A DNA stretch of 64,000 bases from Polymyxa betae A26-41 (Eukaryota; Protista; Endomyxa: Phytomyxea), in contig RBZT01000743.1 in assembly GCA_003693705.1 (NCBI GenBank), forward strand, positions 1 through 64,000, in the 5' to 3' direction. Positions 24,143 to 41,100 of this stretch are shown here, one piece after another. The position numbers and the translations under genes were made by a program. Each line of letters starts with the position of its first letter. Positions within the stretch are counted from its first letter, which is position 1. The notes beneath the pieces were generated by a model. The model was not told where the DNA came from, ran no database searches, and saw only the letters and a list, made by a program, of their open reading frames with translations.

Positions 24143-25283
24143 TCAAGATTTAACTGACTTGACGTCTAACAGCCGAGCTTCGGTTGATAGCTGCCTGGCC
24201 TTACTAGGGACTTGATATAAGTATAGCGAATAGCTAACCATTATTATAGCCAGTACTAATGTCAGCCTGAGTGGTATGCCAAACATTACACGCTGAATGA
24301 CAGCAACAACCACCATCTCAGCGAAGTTCGCGTACTCCTTGATGAGGACATCCAGGTGTCGTAAGACCAGCGATGTGCAGACACCGCCCAGGCCAGCCAC
24401 AACAAGAATCGCTAACGCATGCATATCAAAGCCCACAAGCAGATTCGAAAGAATCTCGGGGCGGAAAGCGATAATCGCAAGCAAATTGAACACGATGGAC
24501 CAGAAGTACAGGTAAATATTCTTCAACCAAATTCCCATGTCGCTTGAGTCCTTATGCTGTAATAACCACTGGAAGTAAACGCCGCCTAAGCTCGAGCAAA
24601 CGCCCTGAACCGACATCATAGCAATTGCGATGAGTCCATCGTCAGGACTGAAGCTCTCGCTTTGTTCGACAACGCAGGCAAGCATGAGTAATACTAGTCC
24701 ATACCATTGACGAGGTCTTAGCCATTTCTTGAAGAACCATTGTGACAGCAGACCGGAGAATACGATTCGCGTGTTGATGAGAATGCGATACGTTCCAGGT
24801 TCCATCAGTTTCAAATTGATGAAAGCAAGCCCTAAGTTGAAATTGAGTTGCAGATTTAACATCAAATTCTTCAAGAAAACCACCATTATACATTACATAG
24901 ACAGCTGCAGGGATGATGAAATATATACCATCTGGAAACTTGTTGATCAGAATTATGGATTTTGTTCTAATATCTGATGACGACTCTTCAGACCTGAAAG
25001 GAGATTACTTAGTTGGACCCAACAGATCAAAGTATTACGTGAAAAGGAAGATTGTCAATGATAATGTGATTTTGAAGAGTTCAATAAACAAGGTCATGGC
25101 CATGATCTATACTGCAATCAGAATCTAAAACTGATCAGAACGAAAATCTTGCACTTCGTATGGATATTGATGATCGTCAACATTTTCTGTTTGCCGCGAT
25201 TGAGAATTCTTTATGAGGATCGCTTGTGCAGACCAGAGCGCCACATAGGCGGTGATATAAAGCCACCGACGGTCAGGGGCCAT
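24143..25283 (-). CDS. Nucleotide-sugar transporter, SLC35A-like, paralog 1
   Basis: MAPDRRWLYITAYVALWSAQAILIK...YPYE|IMAMTLFIELFK; EPGTYRILINTRIVFSGLL; QWYGLVLL; GGVYFQWLLQ; WLKNIYLYFWS. Confidence 0.85.
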
Positions 25284-33109: not shown

Positions 33110-34290
33110 ATGATTGATCATCGCTGCATTTACGTTGTCGTCTATGTCTTTCTCTGGTCAACGCAGGCTCTCCTAATTAAGCAATCGGTTCAAGGTCCGA
33201 AAGATGCTCCTTTGCAAGCCGAATATCCTTATGAGGCAGGTTCATGATATCTAATTGGGAGACCTGAAACTCAAGTTCGATCAGGTTCTGTCAATGATCA
33301 TTCTTGTGGAAGGGTTCAAGCTGGCGGTTGCTCTGTTGGTCTATTTCTGCACGTATGACCAACCATTATTGTATTCTAGCCGCTAACCTGTAACTAAGCG
33401 ACCATGAATGGACCAGAGGAAAGGCCAGCAAATCATGGACGCTGCTGGCACATTTCAACGATGGGATGGCGCTGATAATAGCAGCTGTTATATATGCAGT
33501 ATATAATGGTAGAATGGGCTGCTCCATCATCATGGCATTATGATAAAAGCCTTCTATAGGGCTGTCCTTTATATGTCTGAAGTTATTGGAGCCCGGCACC
33601 ATTCGGGTTCTCATCAATCTTCGTGTGATATTCTCTGGCGTCCTGTTGCATTTCGTTTACAAGCGGAGGCTGGCTGCCAAGCAGTGGATAGCGCTGGGTC
33701 TGCTGTGTTCAGCCTGCGTCGTCGAGCAAAGCGGGAGCTTCCGGTTGGATGGCGGCTTAGTCGCCCTGGCTTTGGTGCTCCTGCAAGGATTCTGTTCTAG
33801 CCTGGGAGGAATCTATTTTCAATGGCTTCTGCAACGAAACTATTCGCTTGGAATCTGGGTGAAGAACATCTATCTGTATTTTTGGTCATTGGTCGTGTAT
33901 CTCTTCGCAATCTGTGCCTTCCGTCCTGAGCTTTTATCACCAGCTGCGTTCCTACATAACCTTGACGTCAGAGCTATCCAGATCGTGATCGTTGCAGGGC
34001 TTGGTGGGATATTTACAGCCTTATTGCTGAGACACTTGAACGTCATTGTCAAAGAGTATGCCAATTTCGCCGAAATGATCGTCGTCGCTATTGCCCAAAA
34101 TATGCTATTCCAAACGCCGCTTCGCCCGACTCTGTTCATGGCCATATTTCTGGTGACGATCTCGCTGATAATATACAATTCGACACGGTCCATATTACCG
34201 AAAATCAATGGCGAATTAATCGAGACATCAACACTAAGAAAGTTTCAAAAAAACGATCACAGCTACTTACCAATCTCCATTAAAGAATGA
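33110..34290 (+). CDS. Nucleotide-sugar transporter, SLC35A-like, paralog 2
   Basis: MIDHRCIYVVVYVFLWSTQALLIK...YPYE|VLSM; EPGTIRVLINLRVIFSG; GGIYFQWLLQ; WVKNIYLYFWS; KEYANFAEM shared with paralog 1. Confidence 0.87.
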
Positions 34291-34898: not shown

Positions 34899-35086
34899 AT
34901 CGAGCGTTCACACGACTTGTTCTTTTACTCTTGTTTTCGTCTCCTTTTTGTTCTTTAAAATGATGGGATTTATCGACTTTATTGAAAAAAAAAGGTCGCT
35001 GATTTTTCTTCAATAAAGTCGGTAAATCCCAAAATTTTCAAACAAAAAGGAGACGAAAATGAGAGAAAACCGTGGGAACGCTCGAT
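34899..35086. repeat. Long imperfect palindrome / hairpin, about 190 nt
   Basis: ATCGAGCGTTC pairs with GAACGCTCGAT; TTTTCGTCTCCTTTTTGTT pairs with AACAAAAAGGAGACGAAAA; GGGATTTATCGACTTTATTGAA pairs with TTCAATAAAGTCGGTAAATCCC. Confidence 0.9.
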
Positions 35087-36048
35087 AATCCCAAATCAAT
35101 GCAAAAACACAATCGCGATATAAATAAAAACCAATTCCCATTTATATCATCCCGTGCGGTTCACCAGCCAATCCAAAAAATAAATAACCGATATAGACCA
35201 ATCCATTCTAATTTTATCTCGGTAATTAATTCGGGAAAATCTCATCCATCTTGTTGAATGAAGCCAAATAATCTACTCCATGATAAAGCAACGCCGCAAT
35301 CTGAACTGGCAACAGGAAGAATTTCACTATTTCTTTCAAACAACCAACTATATTAGATCTGACATTCTATTCTTGCATGCACCTGCTGGAGTCGAGACGC
35401 ATTTTGACCTTATCAATGGCAGCGCTGAAACGTTCCGACTCTAAACGGTTGTATCTTTTCTCTAAAAGGATAAGACTCGCCAGGTCGCGAAGAACTTTTT
35501 TCCCATCTCCTAAAAGCTCGTTTTGAAGAAGTGTATCAATCTCGGTCAGTATCTCTGCGCCCTCTCGCAAGATGTTTCTGGAGGAATGGCTTGCTGTAAA
35601 TGATGTTCCGCGTTCGACCAGCTTGTCCATCTGAGCGAAGAGGTCCAAGCGGGCGAATGATTCACGAAGAAGTTCCAATTTATTCACCACTGTTGGAGAC
35701 ATTCATCATATTTATCCATTTTGTTAATATAATCAACACAAACTCCTTTTTTACATCTGGTTTCAGCACAATAGTATAGAGTTTCATTTTCATCAAAGCA
35801 AATAAGGCAAGTGTTATAAATGGCATTCATTTTATCTATATCTATAATCTTTTTTTTTTATCTTTTTCAGTATTTTTCAACAGTATAAACGGTGATTGGT
35901 TTTTGGTTTATATCAGTAATTTATTTTTTGGGGCGGGTTGGTGATATAAATGGGAAGTGGTTTTCATTTATATCAAATTGGGTTTTTGGATTGATTTGGG
36001 ATTGGTCTGGTGATATAAATGGGAGTTGGGTTCGTTTATATCGGTAAT
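35087..36048. mobile_element. Putative non-autonomous foldback/TIR-type element with about 120-bp imperfect inverted arms enclosing an orphan ORF
   Basis: The reverse complement of 35087-35149 closely matches 35942-36003, and about 35162-35205 matches about 35900-35944. Arms are built from GATATAAAT-N13/14-(A/G)TTTATATC units. No transposase or TSD seen. Confidence 0.5.
35367..35702 (-). CDS. Orphan 111-aa helical protein inside the inverted-repeat cassette
   Basis: Intronless ATG ORF with Leu/Glu/Arg-rich amphipathic pattern, in AT-rich flanks. Confidence 0.45.
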   Translation of the reverse strand: MSPTVVNKLELLRESFARLDLFAQMDKLVERGTSFTASHSSRNILREGAEILTEIDTLLQNELLGDGKKVLRDLASLILLEKRYNRLESERFSAAIDKVKMRLDSSRCMQE

Positions 36049-36644
36049 ATACACGTTGCGTTCTTTCAGCCGAACCAGCCTCTTAAGTAGTGATCTCCAA
36101 GTAGCGCGCAAGACGTGGCGCGGACTCCTGCTAAGTCGATTTTTCGGTTCAGTCGATTAGGAACGCACTTGACGCGGAGAGGCCTCGCTCCCCACCAACC
36201 AGATTGGGGTCCTCCTCACCCATCTTCGCCATACATGACAGCAATTAAGAACTGGGACTTAGAATCTTCATTGTCTGAACCATTGTCTACAGATCGCATT
36301 CAGGACACATGGTCTGGCTGCGTCAATCAATGCAACATGAGTCGCATGGCTTATAGAGGCACCGTCATCTTGCCGGAGAAAGATGAAGTAGAATACCTGC
36401 ATGATCAGTACTGGGTGCCATTTCACAATTGCCCATTGGCGAATGCAACCCTGGCTACATGCGTTCAGTTACAGGCAAGTGGCAAACCAAGACGAGAAAA
36501 TACAGATCAAGCTGAAAAGAAAGCGTTCCTATACAAGGAAGGACTGTTTAATGTCCACAACTAAAGCGGCAGCAATCATAGTGGCAACCCCGGTAATGAA
36601 ATAGTTCTATTGACTACTAATTTAATATAGATATAAGCTATTCT

Positions 36645-38041
36645 CTAATCGGGATGATCTCGTGGCCTAGCACGACTTAGAACGTTATTGACATCAGTGA
36701 TGTCACGGCTGAGGTCTTTGGCAAGTTCATGACCAAGCCATCTGGGCAATACCATTTTGATAGGCACTTGCCCATCAGCTTCAGAAATGACATCGTCTAA
36801 GTCGAACTTCCAAACCTAACGAAACTCTGTTGGTCATCCTTCTTGAAAACCATATTGCAATTTTTTGGCTGTACTGTACCCTATTGCAATGGAACCATAC
36901 ATCAGGATGTTTGAAATTCCCCTTTAAAGCCAGTTCCTAAATTCTGTAAAATTTTGGTTTGTTCACATTAAAACCCAATTATACCGAAGTGGTTGCTTGC
37001 CTGGCCAAATCGTTTAAAGCTTGTATGTCTGTAGTGGAAAGTTCAGCGCCAACAATGCATACTGGAACGACGCTATCATGTTCAGTATCATGAGCTCCCA
37101 ACAAAAATTGGGAGAACTGTGAATCTGATGAGTTTCGATATGCTCCTGCAAAAATTGAAGCCATAATTCAATAATTTGATGTTCTGGTTACCAAGAGGGA
37201 CTAATTTTAAGGGTCCTTTGAACACGTTCGAGCGAAGCTTAACCATTTCATAGTTGAAATTATCCATGGTTTTTTTCCTGTGCCTCAGGAAATGACGAAT
37301 CCCCAAAACGGTCAACAATACAACAGTCGCTACTGCGACTCCAGCAGTAATCCACAATATAATTGAAGACTTCAAATGTCGTTTACGATTCATGTAGTCA
37401 TCTTGTTCTGAAGAAGACGCTATGGGATCTGAATCTGGTGTAGCTCCAGGTCGGGAGTTAACGCTTTGGCTGTCAAGACGAACAATGATTCTTGCTAGGA
37501 AGAAATATCCACGAATGACGAAAAAATTGCCAAGCGTTAGAAATGGGGTCAGATCGATTGAATGACCAGAGTTGAATCTTTGCCTTTTGAATGCAGTAAT
37601 AGATCGATCGGCGAGCAGTCCCCAGTCGCGATTTTCAGCTCGATGAAACCAGATGTCGTGATTATGAGTCGGGTAGATGTGGAACAGACGCAAGACGACC
37701 GGCGAGATCTGTCTTGTGAATAACCCAGAAGATCCATCTAAAGCACGAGTTCATTACCGACATTTACCAAAATCATATTATAAATTGCCTGTCATAAATT
37801 CTATAGATGTAATGGATTGATTGTTGGTATTCAACACAAATTCAAAGCAATCAGAATTGTTCGTGTTGTACTGAAGCACATCTCCGACGCCGTTGGGCTC
37901 TTCTAATAAAAGCTCTCCAGTCTTGATCCAGGACAGCTCTAGACTTGTTACTAACCTCGCCGCTGCGACACTAACCGTCAACATGCAGAGAATCGGCATG
38001 CTAGACAAGAAACTTTTCGACGAATGTAAAAAAAACTTCAT
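36645..38041 (-). CDS. Type-I membrane protein (signal peptide, ectodomain, TM) with a cytoplasmic DNA ligase I-like OB-fold; 5 exons, 395 aa
   Basis: Exons 38041-37789, 37737-37192, 37145-36985, 36936-36880, 36815-36645 total 1188 nt in frame. TM IILWITAGVAVATVVLLTVLGI then RHFLRHRKK. Tail LKLVPLGAY..FLLGAHD..VCIVG..HPDVWF..VW..LPRW. Confidence 0.75.
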
Positions 38042-38100
38042 GTTTTACTTGCCACGTTTGCCGACGCGGTTTTGAGACGTCAACGAGGTCGGTCAAGATA

Positions 38101-41100
38101 TTATTGCAATGGAACATGAGTGTAGACCAGGCATCCATTAGCAAATTGCTGAGTGGTATGACAATCGTCGGATTGCAATTTCCATCGTGTCGTCAAGAGT
38201 CCTTCCACACCAACGGGTCCTCGCGCGTGAATACGTCCAGTAGAAATCCCAACCTCAGCCCCGAGGCCGAATCGATAACCGTCTGCGAATCTGGTGGAGG
38301 CATTATGAAAAATGCAAGCACTGTCAACCTAGCGGGAATAAGATTAGTCGAAAAAACATACAAAACCAATGCCCTGACTTGGTTGAGGAAAATCTCTGCA
38401 GTTTCAACATTATCGGAGACAATAGCTTCGGTATGCCCACTGCCAAACTCATGGATATGGTCGATAGCGGCTTGAACATTAGGAACAAGCTCAAGGGTTA
38501 GGCTGAGATCCGAATACTCTATAGACATCGAAACAGCAGGAGTCAAATGAAGGGCACGAACAGCACGTGGTCCTCCAAATACTTTGATAGAAGCTTCCGT
38601 CAAAAGATTTAGAATGATCTGAAAAACATTTTAAGTAACGAAACAATCAAGTCTAGGTATATACGTTGATGTTTCCATTGTTGACATGAGAATCGTGAAT
38701 CAGAATAGTCTCAACGGCATTGCAGGCAGCAGGGTAGGTAGATTTCGAGTCAATCAGCAGAGCTTTAGCTTTTTCCAGATCCGCATCGCAATCGATGTAC
38801 ATATGGCAAATACCGTCCGCGTGGCCTAGTACAGGGATTCTTGTGTTCGATTTCATGAAATTTACTAATTCTGACGACCTAAACTGAATTTGAACATCAA
38901 GCAGAAAGAGTAAATAAAAGCTTTAAACATACCCGCGTGGGATGACCAGATCAATGCAGTCGTCTAGCGATAACAATTCGCGAATATCTTCGCGCGATTC
39001 AACAAGCTGGAGTATGTCTCTAACAAAAATTAAATAAATACAAATACAAGGGCCTGCATACAAGCTCATTTCACCTTGAAACAACACCATTACTGGCAGA
39101 GTAGATAGCGTCAACAATAACAGAATGCAAAATTCGATTTGAATATTTTGCTTCTTTTCCGCCTTTCAGCAAGAGACCATTACAGCTTTGCAACGCTAAA
39201 GAAAAAAATATGATTAGAGCATGAGCTAACAAGCTAACGAGAGAAACTATGACAAACCTAGAGAAGCGATTTGTGGCAGCGCATCTGGACGTGATTCGAA
39301 AACGACCAAAAGCACCCCAATTGGTGACAATTCTTGCCGTAGAATCAATCCTGGAGAAAGCTCAGTCTTTCTCAGTACCCGAGAAAGAGGATCGGGCTGT
39401 GCTGCCAATTGTTCAATTCCTTCGGAAAGCTGTTTTATTTTGGCTTCGGTCAAAACCAACCTGCGAAAAATTCTAAGTGTTAATCCACAACGTAAGCGAA
39501 ATGAAAAGCGACCACAATACCTGTCTTTCATTGATTTGGAGAGGTTTGTTAATTTCATGGAAAGAGTCACATCCTTTTCATTTTCTTGCAAAATTTTATC
39601 ACTATTTTTCAAAAGAGCGACGCTAACCGCTTTCAATATTTCAATGCGTTGAGCGCTGCAGCCATTCTGTCAGTATAAGGAGAAGCGAAGTAAGAAATGC
39701 GATACCTGGTTAGAGAATGTAGCATGCGAGCGGCTTCGCGAGCTAATTGCGCCTGATCCCGAACAGAAATATTACCTTCTTCAATGGTCTTCAAAGAGAA
39801 TAAAGTGCCCACTGTCACGCCATTGCAGATATCTATTATTGAATTCGGCAGATGACCTTCACAAAAACAGTCAAGAAGTTATCAATTTGGCGAGCCAAAC
39901 TGACCCGAAGCAATGACTACAGCACCAACTCCTCGGTTAACCGCATCCATTGCAGCATCGATTTTCGCCTACCGGAACATTCGGAACAGATAAACAAACA
40001 GCAAAGGAGTGACAAACCTGCATACCGCCACGTCCAAGTCGTGATTTTTCGCCAATAGTAACGCTGGCATTGGGGCGGTAAACATGCATAACTCGTGGCT
40101 TTACGCCTTTCTTTAACGTGTTTGGTGGAGCATAATATAGTCCTTCCTATAGGCATCATAGCATTAACAACAGAGCATCACGCGATAAAATAAAATCAAT
40201 GAGAGTCAGCGTACAATCCATATCAGAAAACAGCCGATTTACCACATCAGTTAAAAGGATTTGTAATTGTACGCCCAAGACGGCAGATACCAGAGAGGCA
40301 AGCGAATCATTGTCCCAGAAAATGTGGCCGTCGTCATCAGTGAGAGGAACTTCTCGACTGCTCATAACATCATTCTCATTAAGAATCGGAATGATACCCA
40401 GCGACAGCAACGTCCGCATTGTCGATGCGAACTAGCAAACAGAGCCTTAGACGTATCGTCTTGCAACGGTCGCGGATCCTACCTGATTGCGCTTCTGAGG
40501 TGAATTAAAATTAGAATCCATAACAAGAATCTGAGCACATTTGATATCATGGATGCCAAAAAGAGTCTCATATAACGACATTAGCCGAGATTGACCAGCA
40601 GCAGCACAAGCCTAATCGAGATTATCTGTAACAGCCACAATCATCGGAAAAAGCACCACCTTCGGGTCCCAATCCTGACTCTTCAGGTTCGACTCCAGCT
40701 TGTCCATAGAGTTCTTGAGCGTGCTCTGCAGTATGGACTGCTTGTTGAGCTTACGTCGGCCAACGCCGACAGCGCCCGACGTGACCAAGATAATCTTCTT
40801 GTTTTTCTCATGAAGACGCCCGATCTGATACCAATAAGACAGAAAGATAATGACCAACGGACATCCCAACCTGTTCAACTAGGTTACCAATACGCCCCAG
40901 TGCCAAATGACCCTTCTCAGTCGTCACTAGACATGGATAACGTTACCACAAATGATTCAGGCCTCCTCATGTATCATTTACCGACACCAGTCCCAACTTT
41001 AACCAGAATGAGGTCACATTCTGGAAACTGGTCGCGACGCAAGCCTTTCGGCTGGGGGGCGCTGCTGGTACCCTCGGGCCCCAGTGCCGAAAACGATGAC

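Follow-up and report, generated by a model that had tools for sequence, protein, structure and literature searches.

A Polymyxa betae gene that joins a predicted membrane protein to a LIG1-derived OB domain

Chimeric genes that arise by partial duplication are well known, as are receptors with inactive cytoplasmic domains such as the receptor pseudokinases. A gene of Polymyxa betae A26-41 resembles both kinds, in that copied 3' exons follow an unrelated N-terminus and a fold is kept while its functional residues are lost. Ligase sequence joined to an export signal is known from the minimal periplasmic ATP-dependent ligases of bacteria (Lig E type). Those are complete active enzymes, whereas in P. 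betae the OB domain stands alone and is predicted to face the cytosol. Compared with the OB domain of LIG1/Cdc9 (PF04679), the P. betae protein has the same collinear order of motif V, OB and motif VI, three intron positions and phases in common, similar exon lengths, and about 30% identity in exon 3. In contrast to LIG1/Cdc9, it lacks the DNA-binding and adenylation domains, KxDGxR, and the DNA-contact and motif VI residues, and it has a signal-like peptide, an ectodomain and a transmembrane (TM) helix ahead of the OB domain. The trypanosome proteins KREPA1 and KREPA2 also have an OB fold apart from the ligase catalytic domain, but these proteins are soluble and retain the arginines that bind RNA, and the ligase they serve has no OB domain (PMC3413154). 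The P. betae OB domain comes from LIG1 and is predicted to be membrane-tethered, and no OB-less ligase was found in the genome. The literature searched (the main P. betae annotation paper not among it) describes no membrane protein with a DNA ligase OB domain as its tail, which agrees with an earlier note on this DNA that knew of no described protein combining a TM helix and a ligase OB domain. Our verdict is that the chimeric gene is real and its architecture undescribed in that literature, and that its function has to be inferred.

The gene lies on the minus strand of the window, the stretch of 64,000 nucleotides that was analysed (contig RBZT01000743.1, positions 1 to 64,000, GC content about 45%). 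Its five exons are predicted to splice to 1188 nt, or 395 codons plus a stop (Table 1). Every exon is open in the phase demanded by the adjoining exons, and the coordinates, open frame and phases of the five-exon, 395-aa model proposed in the earlier note were borne out for this predicted splicing. Introns 1 to 4 are 51, 46, 48 and 64 nt long, and six LIG1 introns measured for comparison are 43-53 nt. The model had also been said to splice cleanly. This is correct for introns 2-4, which are GT-AG and leave the frame open, but it left out that the first junction needs either a GC-AG intron or a microexon. Ten other single-intron solutions were found there, and all of them need 111-186 nt. Layouts with GT-AG introns throughout contain a microexon of 21 or 27 nt, for a product of 376 or 378 aa and an unchanged architecture; the 21-nt microexon is flanked by introns at 37837-37789 and 37767-37709. 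Either the GC-AG version of 395 aa or one of the all-GT-AG versions of 376-378 aa may be used. None of them loses the TM helix, the tail or the signal-like N-terminus, and most of the ectodomain is common to all. One exon, read in one frame, holds the TM helix, the basic run RHFLRHRKK and the motif V-like start of the tail, as had been claimed, with no intron or stop between them.

Table 1. Predicted features of the chimeric gene, in window positions
Feature	Position	Strand	Remarks
Exon 1: start codon, predicted signal peptide, start of ectodomain	37789..38041	-	84 open codons
Intron 1	37738..37788	-	GC-AG, 51 nt; contains an in-frame stop; weakest part of the model
Exon 2, whole	37737-37192	-	
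Exon 2, first part: remaining predicted ectodomain and low-complexity stalk	37370..37737	-	codon use z 3.4-3.7, best of six frames
Exon 2: single TM helix, then basic stop-transfer run	37270..37369	-	Kyte-Doolittle 2.52 over 19 aa
Exon 2, 3' end: degenerate motif V of the ligase, followed by the first OB strand	37192..37249	-	ends at the phase-1 Gly codon of LIG1
Exon 3: LIG1 OB-domain exon	36985..37145	-	161 nt (167 nt in LIG1); PF04679, tblastn, ESM, profile
Exon 4: LIG1 OB-domain exon with PDxW motif	36880..36936	-	57 nt (66 nt in LIG1); profile, shuffles
Exon 5: final OB strands, RFPR and motif VI (both eroded), C-terminal-helix region, stop	36645..36815	-	171 nt (195 nt in LIG1)
Introns 2 (37191-37146), 3 (36984-36937) and 4 (36879-36816)	within 36816..37191	-	phases 1, 0, 0; common to both LIG1 genes

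The tail originates from LIG1, and the strongest evidence for this is gene structure. All three tail introns are identical in position and phase to introns in both LIG1 genes of the genome (one in phase 1, within the Gly that precedes AY, and two in phase 0, following the helix and preceding VW), showing that the tail was copied from the 3' exons of LIG1. Exon 5 begins with VW at phase 0, like that of LIG1, and its codon use has a z of 3.0. The exon borders of LIG4 near the last strands, read by eye, appear different from those of the tail. Because the introns were retained, the segment was copied as DNA, and origin as a retrocopy is ruled out. LIG1 has a further intron 41 codons ahead of the first shared one, and the chimeric gene has no counterpart to it, which places the junction within the last 20-40 codons of exon 2, beside the TM helix.

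Sequence comparison, run exon by exon, also connects the tail to LIG1. A profile search against PF04679, suggested in the earlier note, matched exon 3 (E 0.0049, 17.7 bits; the cut-off of 27.5 bits is for the whole domain, and this one exon covers 40 of the 94 positions). Exon 3 also matched the genome's own LIG1 by tblastn (E 2e-5), with about 30% identity (12 of 41 aligned residues), and the ligase C-terminal cluster of the ESM Atlas (0.93, 196 of 256 features). When aligned to a profile built from 64 reference ligases, exons 3, 4 and 5 occupy successive positions, 47-88, 103-109 and 140-167; together with the PF04679 match and the three shared introns, this upholds the collinearity with motif V, OB and motif VI that was noticed first. 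The reference ligases were picked by motif V and RFPR, so that counts of these two motifs are circular. None of 2000 shuffles scored as well against the segment profile as exon 3, and none of 2000 as well as exon 4. Exon 5 is borderline (93 of 2000), and the motif V piece alone is not significant by sequence (596 of 2000).

The genome has two full LIG1 genes, on contigs C535 and C846, and the expectation of a separate intact LIG1 was therefore correct. Both have all three domains, the KYDGER motif and 3' introns of the tail type. Their OB exons are 68-93% identical to each other, far closer than either is to the tail, which scores 66 against the C535 copy and 46 against the C846 copy. At two sites the tail is nearer to outside ligases than to either LIG1 copy: the F of the FLL strand is as in human LIG1, and PDVWF is the reference consensus. 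These residues are a hint of an old duplication, although two sites are no proof, and the fusion may predate the split of the two LIG1 genes. A third ligase, on C344, looks like LIG4 and has its own OB region. The adenylation domain (PF01068) and the N-terminal DNA-binding domain (PF04675) are found in the genome only on C846, C535 and C344. The adenylation domain is thus absent from the contig of the chimeric gene, as had been stated. The gene is not a DNA ligase I, since it has neither KxDGxR nor PF04675, and neither RxDK nor R871/F872. A degraded full ligase was rejected because the adenylation and DNA-binding domains are absent from the contig. A split ligase that needs an OB domain in trans was rejected because all three DNA ligases carry their own OB domain and no PF09414 RNA ligase was found in the draft genome. 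A LIG1 C-terminal region of eukaryote type that has no introns was seen on a 211-kb contig of a viral collection (IMGVR_UViG_2595698905_000001); its identity with the P. betae last exon is 67%.

The N-terminal half has the features of a membrane protein. The hydrophobic stretch in exon 1 (hydropathy 1.75) stops at an AxA-type site near residue 28 and is a putative signal peptide. The TM segment has a Kyte-Doolittle value of 2.5 over 19 aa and is followed by the RHFLRHRKK run, with a charge of +5. Its N-side has four basic residues, offset by acidic ones. With basic residues on both flanks, the topology hinges on the signal peptide, which is located in the weakest exon. The nearest ESM feature neighbours of the TM region are single-pass membrane proteins (0.81-0.87), which is a weak lead only. 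The N-terminal part has no match in Pfam or PDB, and exons 1-2 have no similarity to the LIG1 loci. Single-sequence AlphaFold models of exon 2 (pLDDT 61) and of its first 100 aa (pLDDT 57) are low-confidence, all-helical and uninformative, and Foldseek gave no match.

Searches for relatives point to an orphan. No paralogue of the N-terminal part was found in the genome of 27,085,814 bases and 1001 contigs, by a search that missed even the link between exon 3 and LIG1 in either direction. A paralogue family was rejected on this search of modest sensitivity, which returned no further members. With exon 2 as the query, neither a word search nor a full phmmer search gave a credible relative among 1.84 billion representative proteins, a collection that includes proteins of Plasmodiophora brassicae and Spongospora; the sole phmmer match is a repetitive, unrelated-looking protein. 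A metagenome scan with exon 2 gave no relative either. The orthologues of the same architecture looked for on the earlier note's suggestion were therefore not found in these proteins or metagenomes. Eighty metagenome loci anchored on the neighbouring P5CS-like gene held nothing similar to the chimeric gene, and a nitrilase-anchored synteny search returned nothing. The N-terminal part is either restricted to Polymyxa or diverged beyond detection, and on these comparisons our verdict is that the chimeric gene is probably lineage-restricted.

The reading frame of the tail has been under long-term constraint. The tail is at about 30% identity to LIG1 and has no stops, frameshifts or lost splice sites. 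When neutral decay without indels was simulated to 30-35% identity, 0.5-0.8% of the runs were free of stops, and none of 3000 was free of stops with all six splice dinucleotides intact, indicating that selection kept the frame and the splice sites. A pseudogene remnant was rejected on the same evidence. Codon use has a z of 3.9 in the ligase-like part, which together with the simulation confirms the constraint on the tail, and 3.4-3.7 in the non-ligase part of exon 2. Positive controls of matching length gave 3.3-7.3, and one antisense control also gave 3.3. The non-ligase open stretch of exon 2 would occur by chance with a probability of about 1e-4, and no ORF of at least 60 aa lies antisense to exon 2. 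The codon use of exon 1 (z 0.5) is like random, making the 5' end the weak point of the gene.

The residues lost from the tail are those that LIG1 uses, compared here by alignment and in human LIG1 numbering. The G-x-G-K/R-R loop (R768-K770-R771) is two residues shorter and consists of Ser, Asn and Asp with one Arg, so that it is mostly neutral or acidic. From CKxGTGFSD only C, the first G and S are kept, while K795, T798, G799, F800 and D802 are replaced. This basic loop and KxGTGF contact DNA in the human LIG1 structure. R871 and F872, which are conserved nick-site residues (PMC6344480), are V and L in the tail. The RxDK of motif VI, which serves adenylylation by positioning ATP in step 1 (PMC4609770) and lies opposite the DNA-binding face of the OB domain (PMC6212786), is absent in either register, in agreement with the first reading of motif VI as eroded. 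Among the 64 reference ligases the basic loop is present in 56, GT/SGF in 58 and RxDK in 63. The tail keeps the core hydrophobics, C794, G797, PDxW, VW and P873-R874, as well as the motif V Lys and a small number of other basic and aromatic residues. Its OB domain has a net charge of -4, compared with 0 and +2 for the LIG1 copies. The tail had been called catalytically dead, which is loose wording because the OB domain never held the catalytic lysine. Both working faces of the domain are eroded while the core is retained, as would be expected of a fold that outlasted its former functions.

We put a probability of about 0.5 on the reading that the gene encodes a single type I membrane protein, with an OB barrel in the cytosol as its tail for protein docking. 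The 3' end of LIG1, from motif V through the C-terminal helix and with its three introns, was copied at the DNA level, and it continues in frame directly after the TM helix of an unrelated region of signal peptide, ectodomain and TM helix. In the resulting type I protein the N-terminal part would be luminal or outside the cell and the OB barrel cytosolic. The predicted barrel probably still folds, and it would neither ligate nor clamp duplex DNA. The loss of the basic loop, KxGTGF, R871/F872 and RxDK makes protein docking likelier than nucleic-acid binding, and the tail would most likely be the docking part, for an adaptor or trafficking role, of a parasite protein at the surface or in the endomembranes. 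No result points to a binding partner. The more specific idea of a plasmodiophorid receptor, in which the LIG1 OB domain serves as a cytoplasmic signalling or nucleic-acid-sensing module that relays a host-side or luminal cue, is tentative and on balance improbable.

Among the alternatives, the one that survives best has the same chimeric gene with the tail as a passive folded appendage that serves stability, spacing or as a retention signal, the function being in the ectodomain. Every functional surface known from ligases is eroded while the core is kept, and the constraint seen in the data concerns the frame and not a binding site, as this alternative would have it. However, a stop could have shortened a passive tail, and instead the whole domain is retained at near-original exon lengths, so that we consider a passive tail unlikely. 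Less likely still is that the locus does not encode one protein. The TM gene would then end in a retained intron 2 (stop at 37088), with the ligase exons a remnant or a separate OB-only unit that starts from a Met behind the TM helix; or exon 1 would be unused and an internal Met would give a shorter, signal-anchored protein. In-frame Met codons are indeed found both before and behind the TM helix, and the second Met of exon 1 is at 37999. The need for a non-canonical intron 1 or a microexon and the absence of a coding signal in exon 1 also favor this alternative. So does the P5CS-like gene upstream on the same strand, whose stop is only 62 nt from the ATG of the chimeric gene (38042-38103), meaning that the promoter and UTRs must overlap this neighbour or the transcripts must be joined. 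However, P. brassicae is reported to have very short gaps between genes, with UTRs that overlap (PMC4815078), no stop or intron separates the TM helix from motif V, and a remnant at about 30% identity would not retain its frame and splice sites.

The version proposed in the earlier note, in which a membrane-tethered OB fold binds ssDNA or RNA through a remodelled surface, is more doubtful than either of these. Nucleic acid is a common ligand of OB folds, the trypanosome editosome has an OB domain that acts in trans to promote RNA binding (PMC3413154), and R874, the motif V Lys and a few aromatics are retained in the tail. However, LIG1 grips DNA through the basic loop, KxGTGF and R871/F872, and it is these that the tail has lost, whereas its core positions are retained; its net charge is negative. 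A nucleic-acid-binding module is thus disfavored. A tethered decoy or trans-partner, which would bind LIG1 at its adenylation or DNA-binding domain and hold or damp the enzyme at a membrane such as the nuclear envelope, is very improbable: the natural partners of an OB domain are other ligase domains (PMC4609770), the C-terminal helix region keeps its length and trans-acting OB domains exist, but the tail's motif VI, by which an OB domain docks on the adenylation domain, is eroded, each of the three DNA ligases has an OB domain of its own, and no PF09414 RNA ligase was found in the draft genome.

Several other features were seen near the gene. About 600 nt downstream, at 35087-36051, imperfect inverted repeats of about 100 nt with GATATAAAT-like units surround a 111-aa ORF (35367-35702, minus strand) that occurs once in the genome, uses codons like a coding sequence (z 4.0) and matches nothing in Pfam. 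This cassette may be the remnant of a mobile element, and a long fold-back hairpin adjoins it at 34899-35086. A 149-aa orphan ORF at 36115-36564 (plus strand) lies tail-to-tail with the chimeric gene and has a weak coding signal (z 1.7) and no Pfam match. An exact direct repeat of 14 nt, at 36882-36895 in exon 4 and at 38102-38115 at the P5CS stop, is probably due to chance. Two nucleotide-sugar transporter paralogues (24143-25274 and 33116-34290) are inverted and about 8 kb apart, and in P. brassicae they are in tandem. The closest named relatives of a neighbouring transporter are from Spongospora subterranea and P. brassicae, and the P. brassicae transporter locus has no other neighbour in common with the P. 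betae window.

P. betae, a plasmodiophorid that parasitizes the roots of sugar beet, carries beet necrotic yellow vein virus, the uptake of which is poorly understood (PMC11784302); no result ties the chimeric gene to virus uptake. A structure-guided secretome screen that included P. betae excluded TM proteins by design (PMC12503489), and such proteins are consequently little studied. The ancestral-looking residues of the tail suggest that diverged orthologues may exist in related parasites. Overall it appears that a core DNA replication domain was recruited to a membrane protein, with the introns as a record of the event and the residue losses as signs of a change of job. With the chimeric gene, the capabilities of a ligase OB domain that has been freed from the enzyme could be tested directly.
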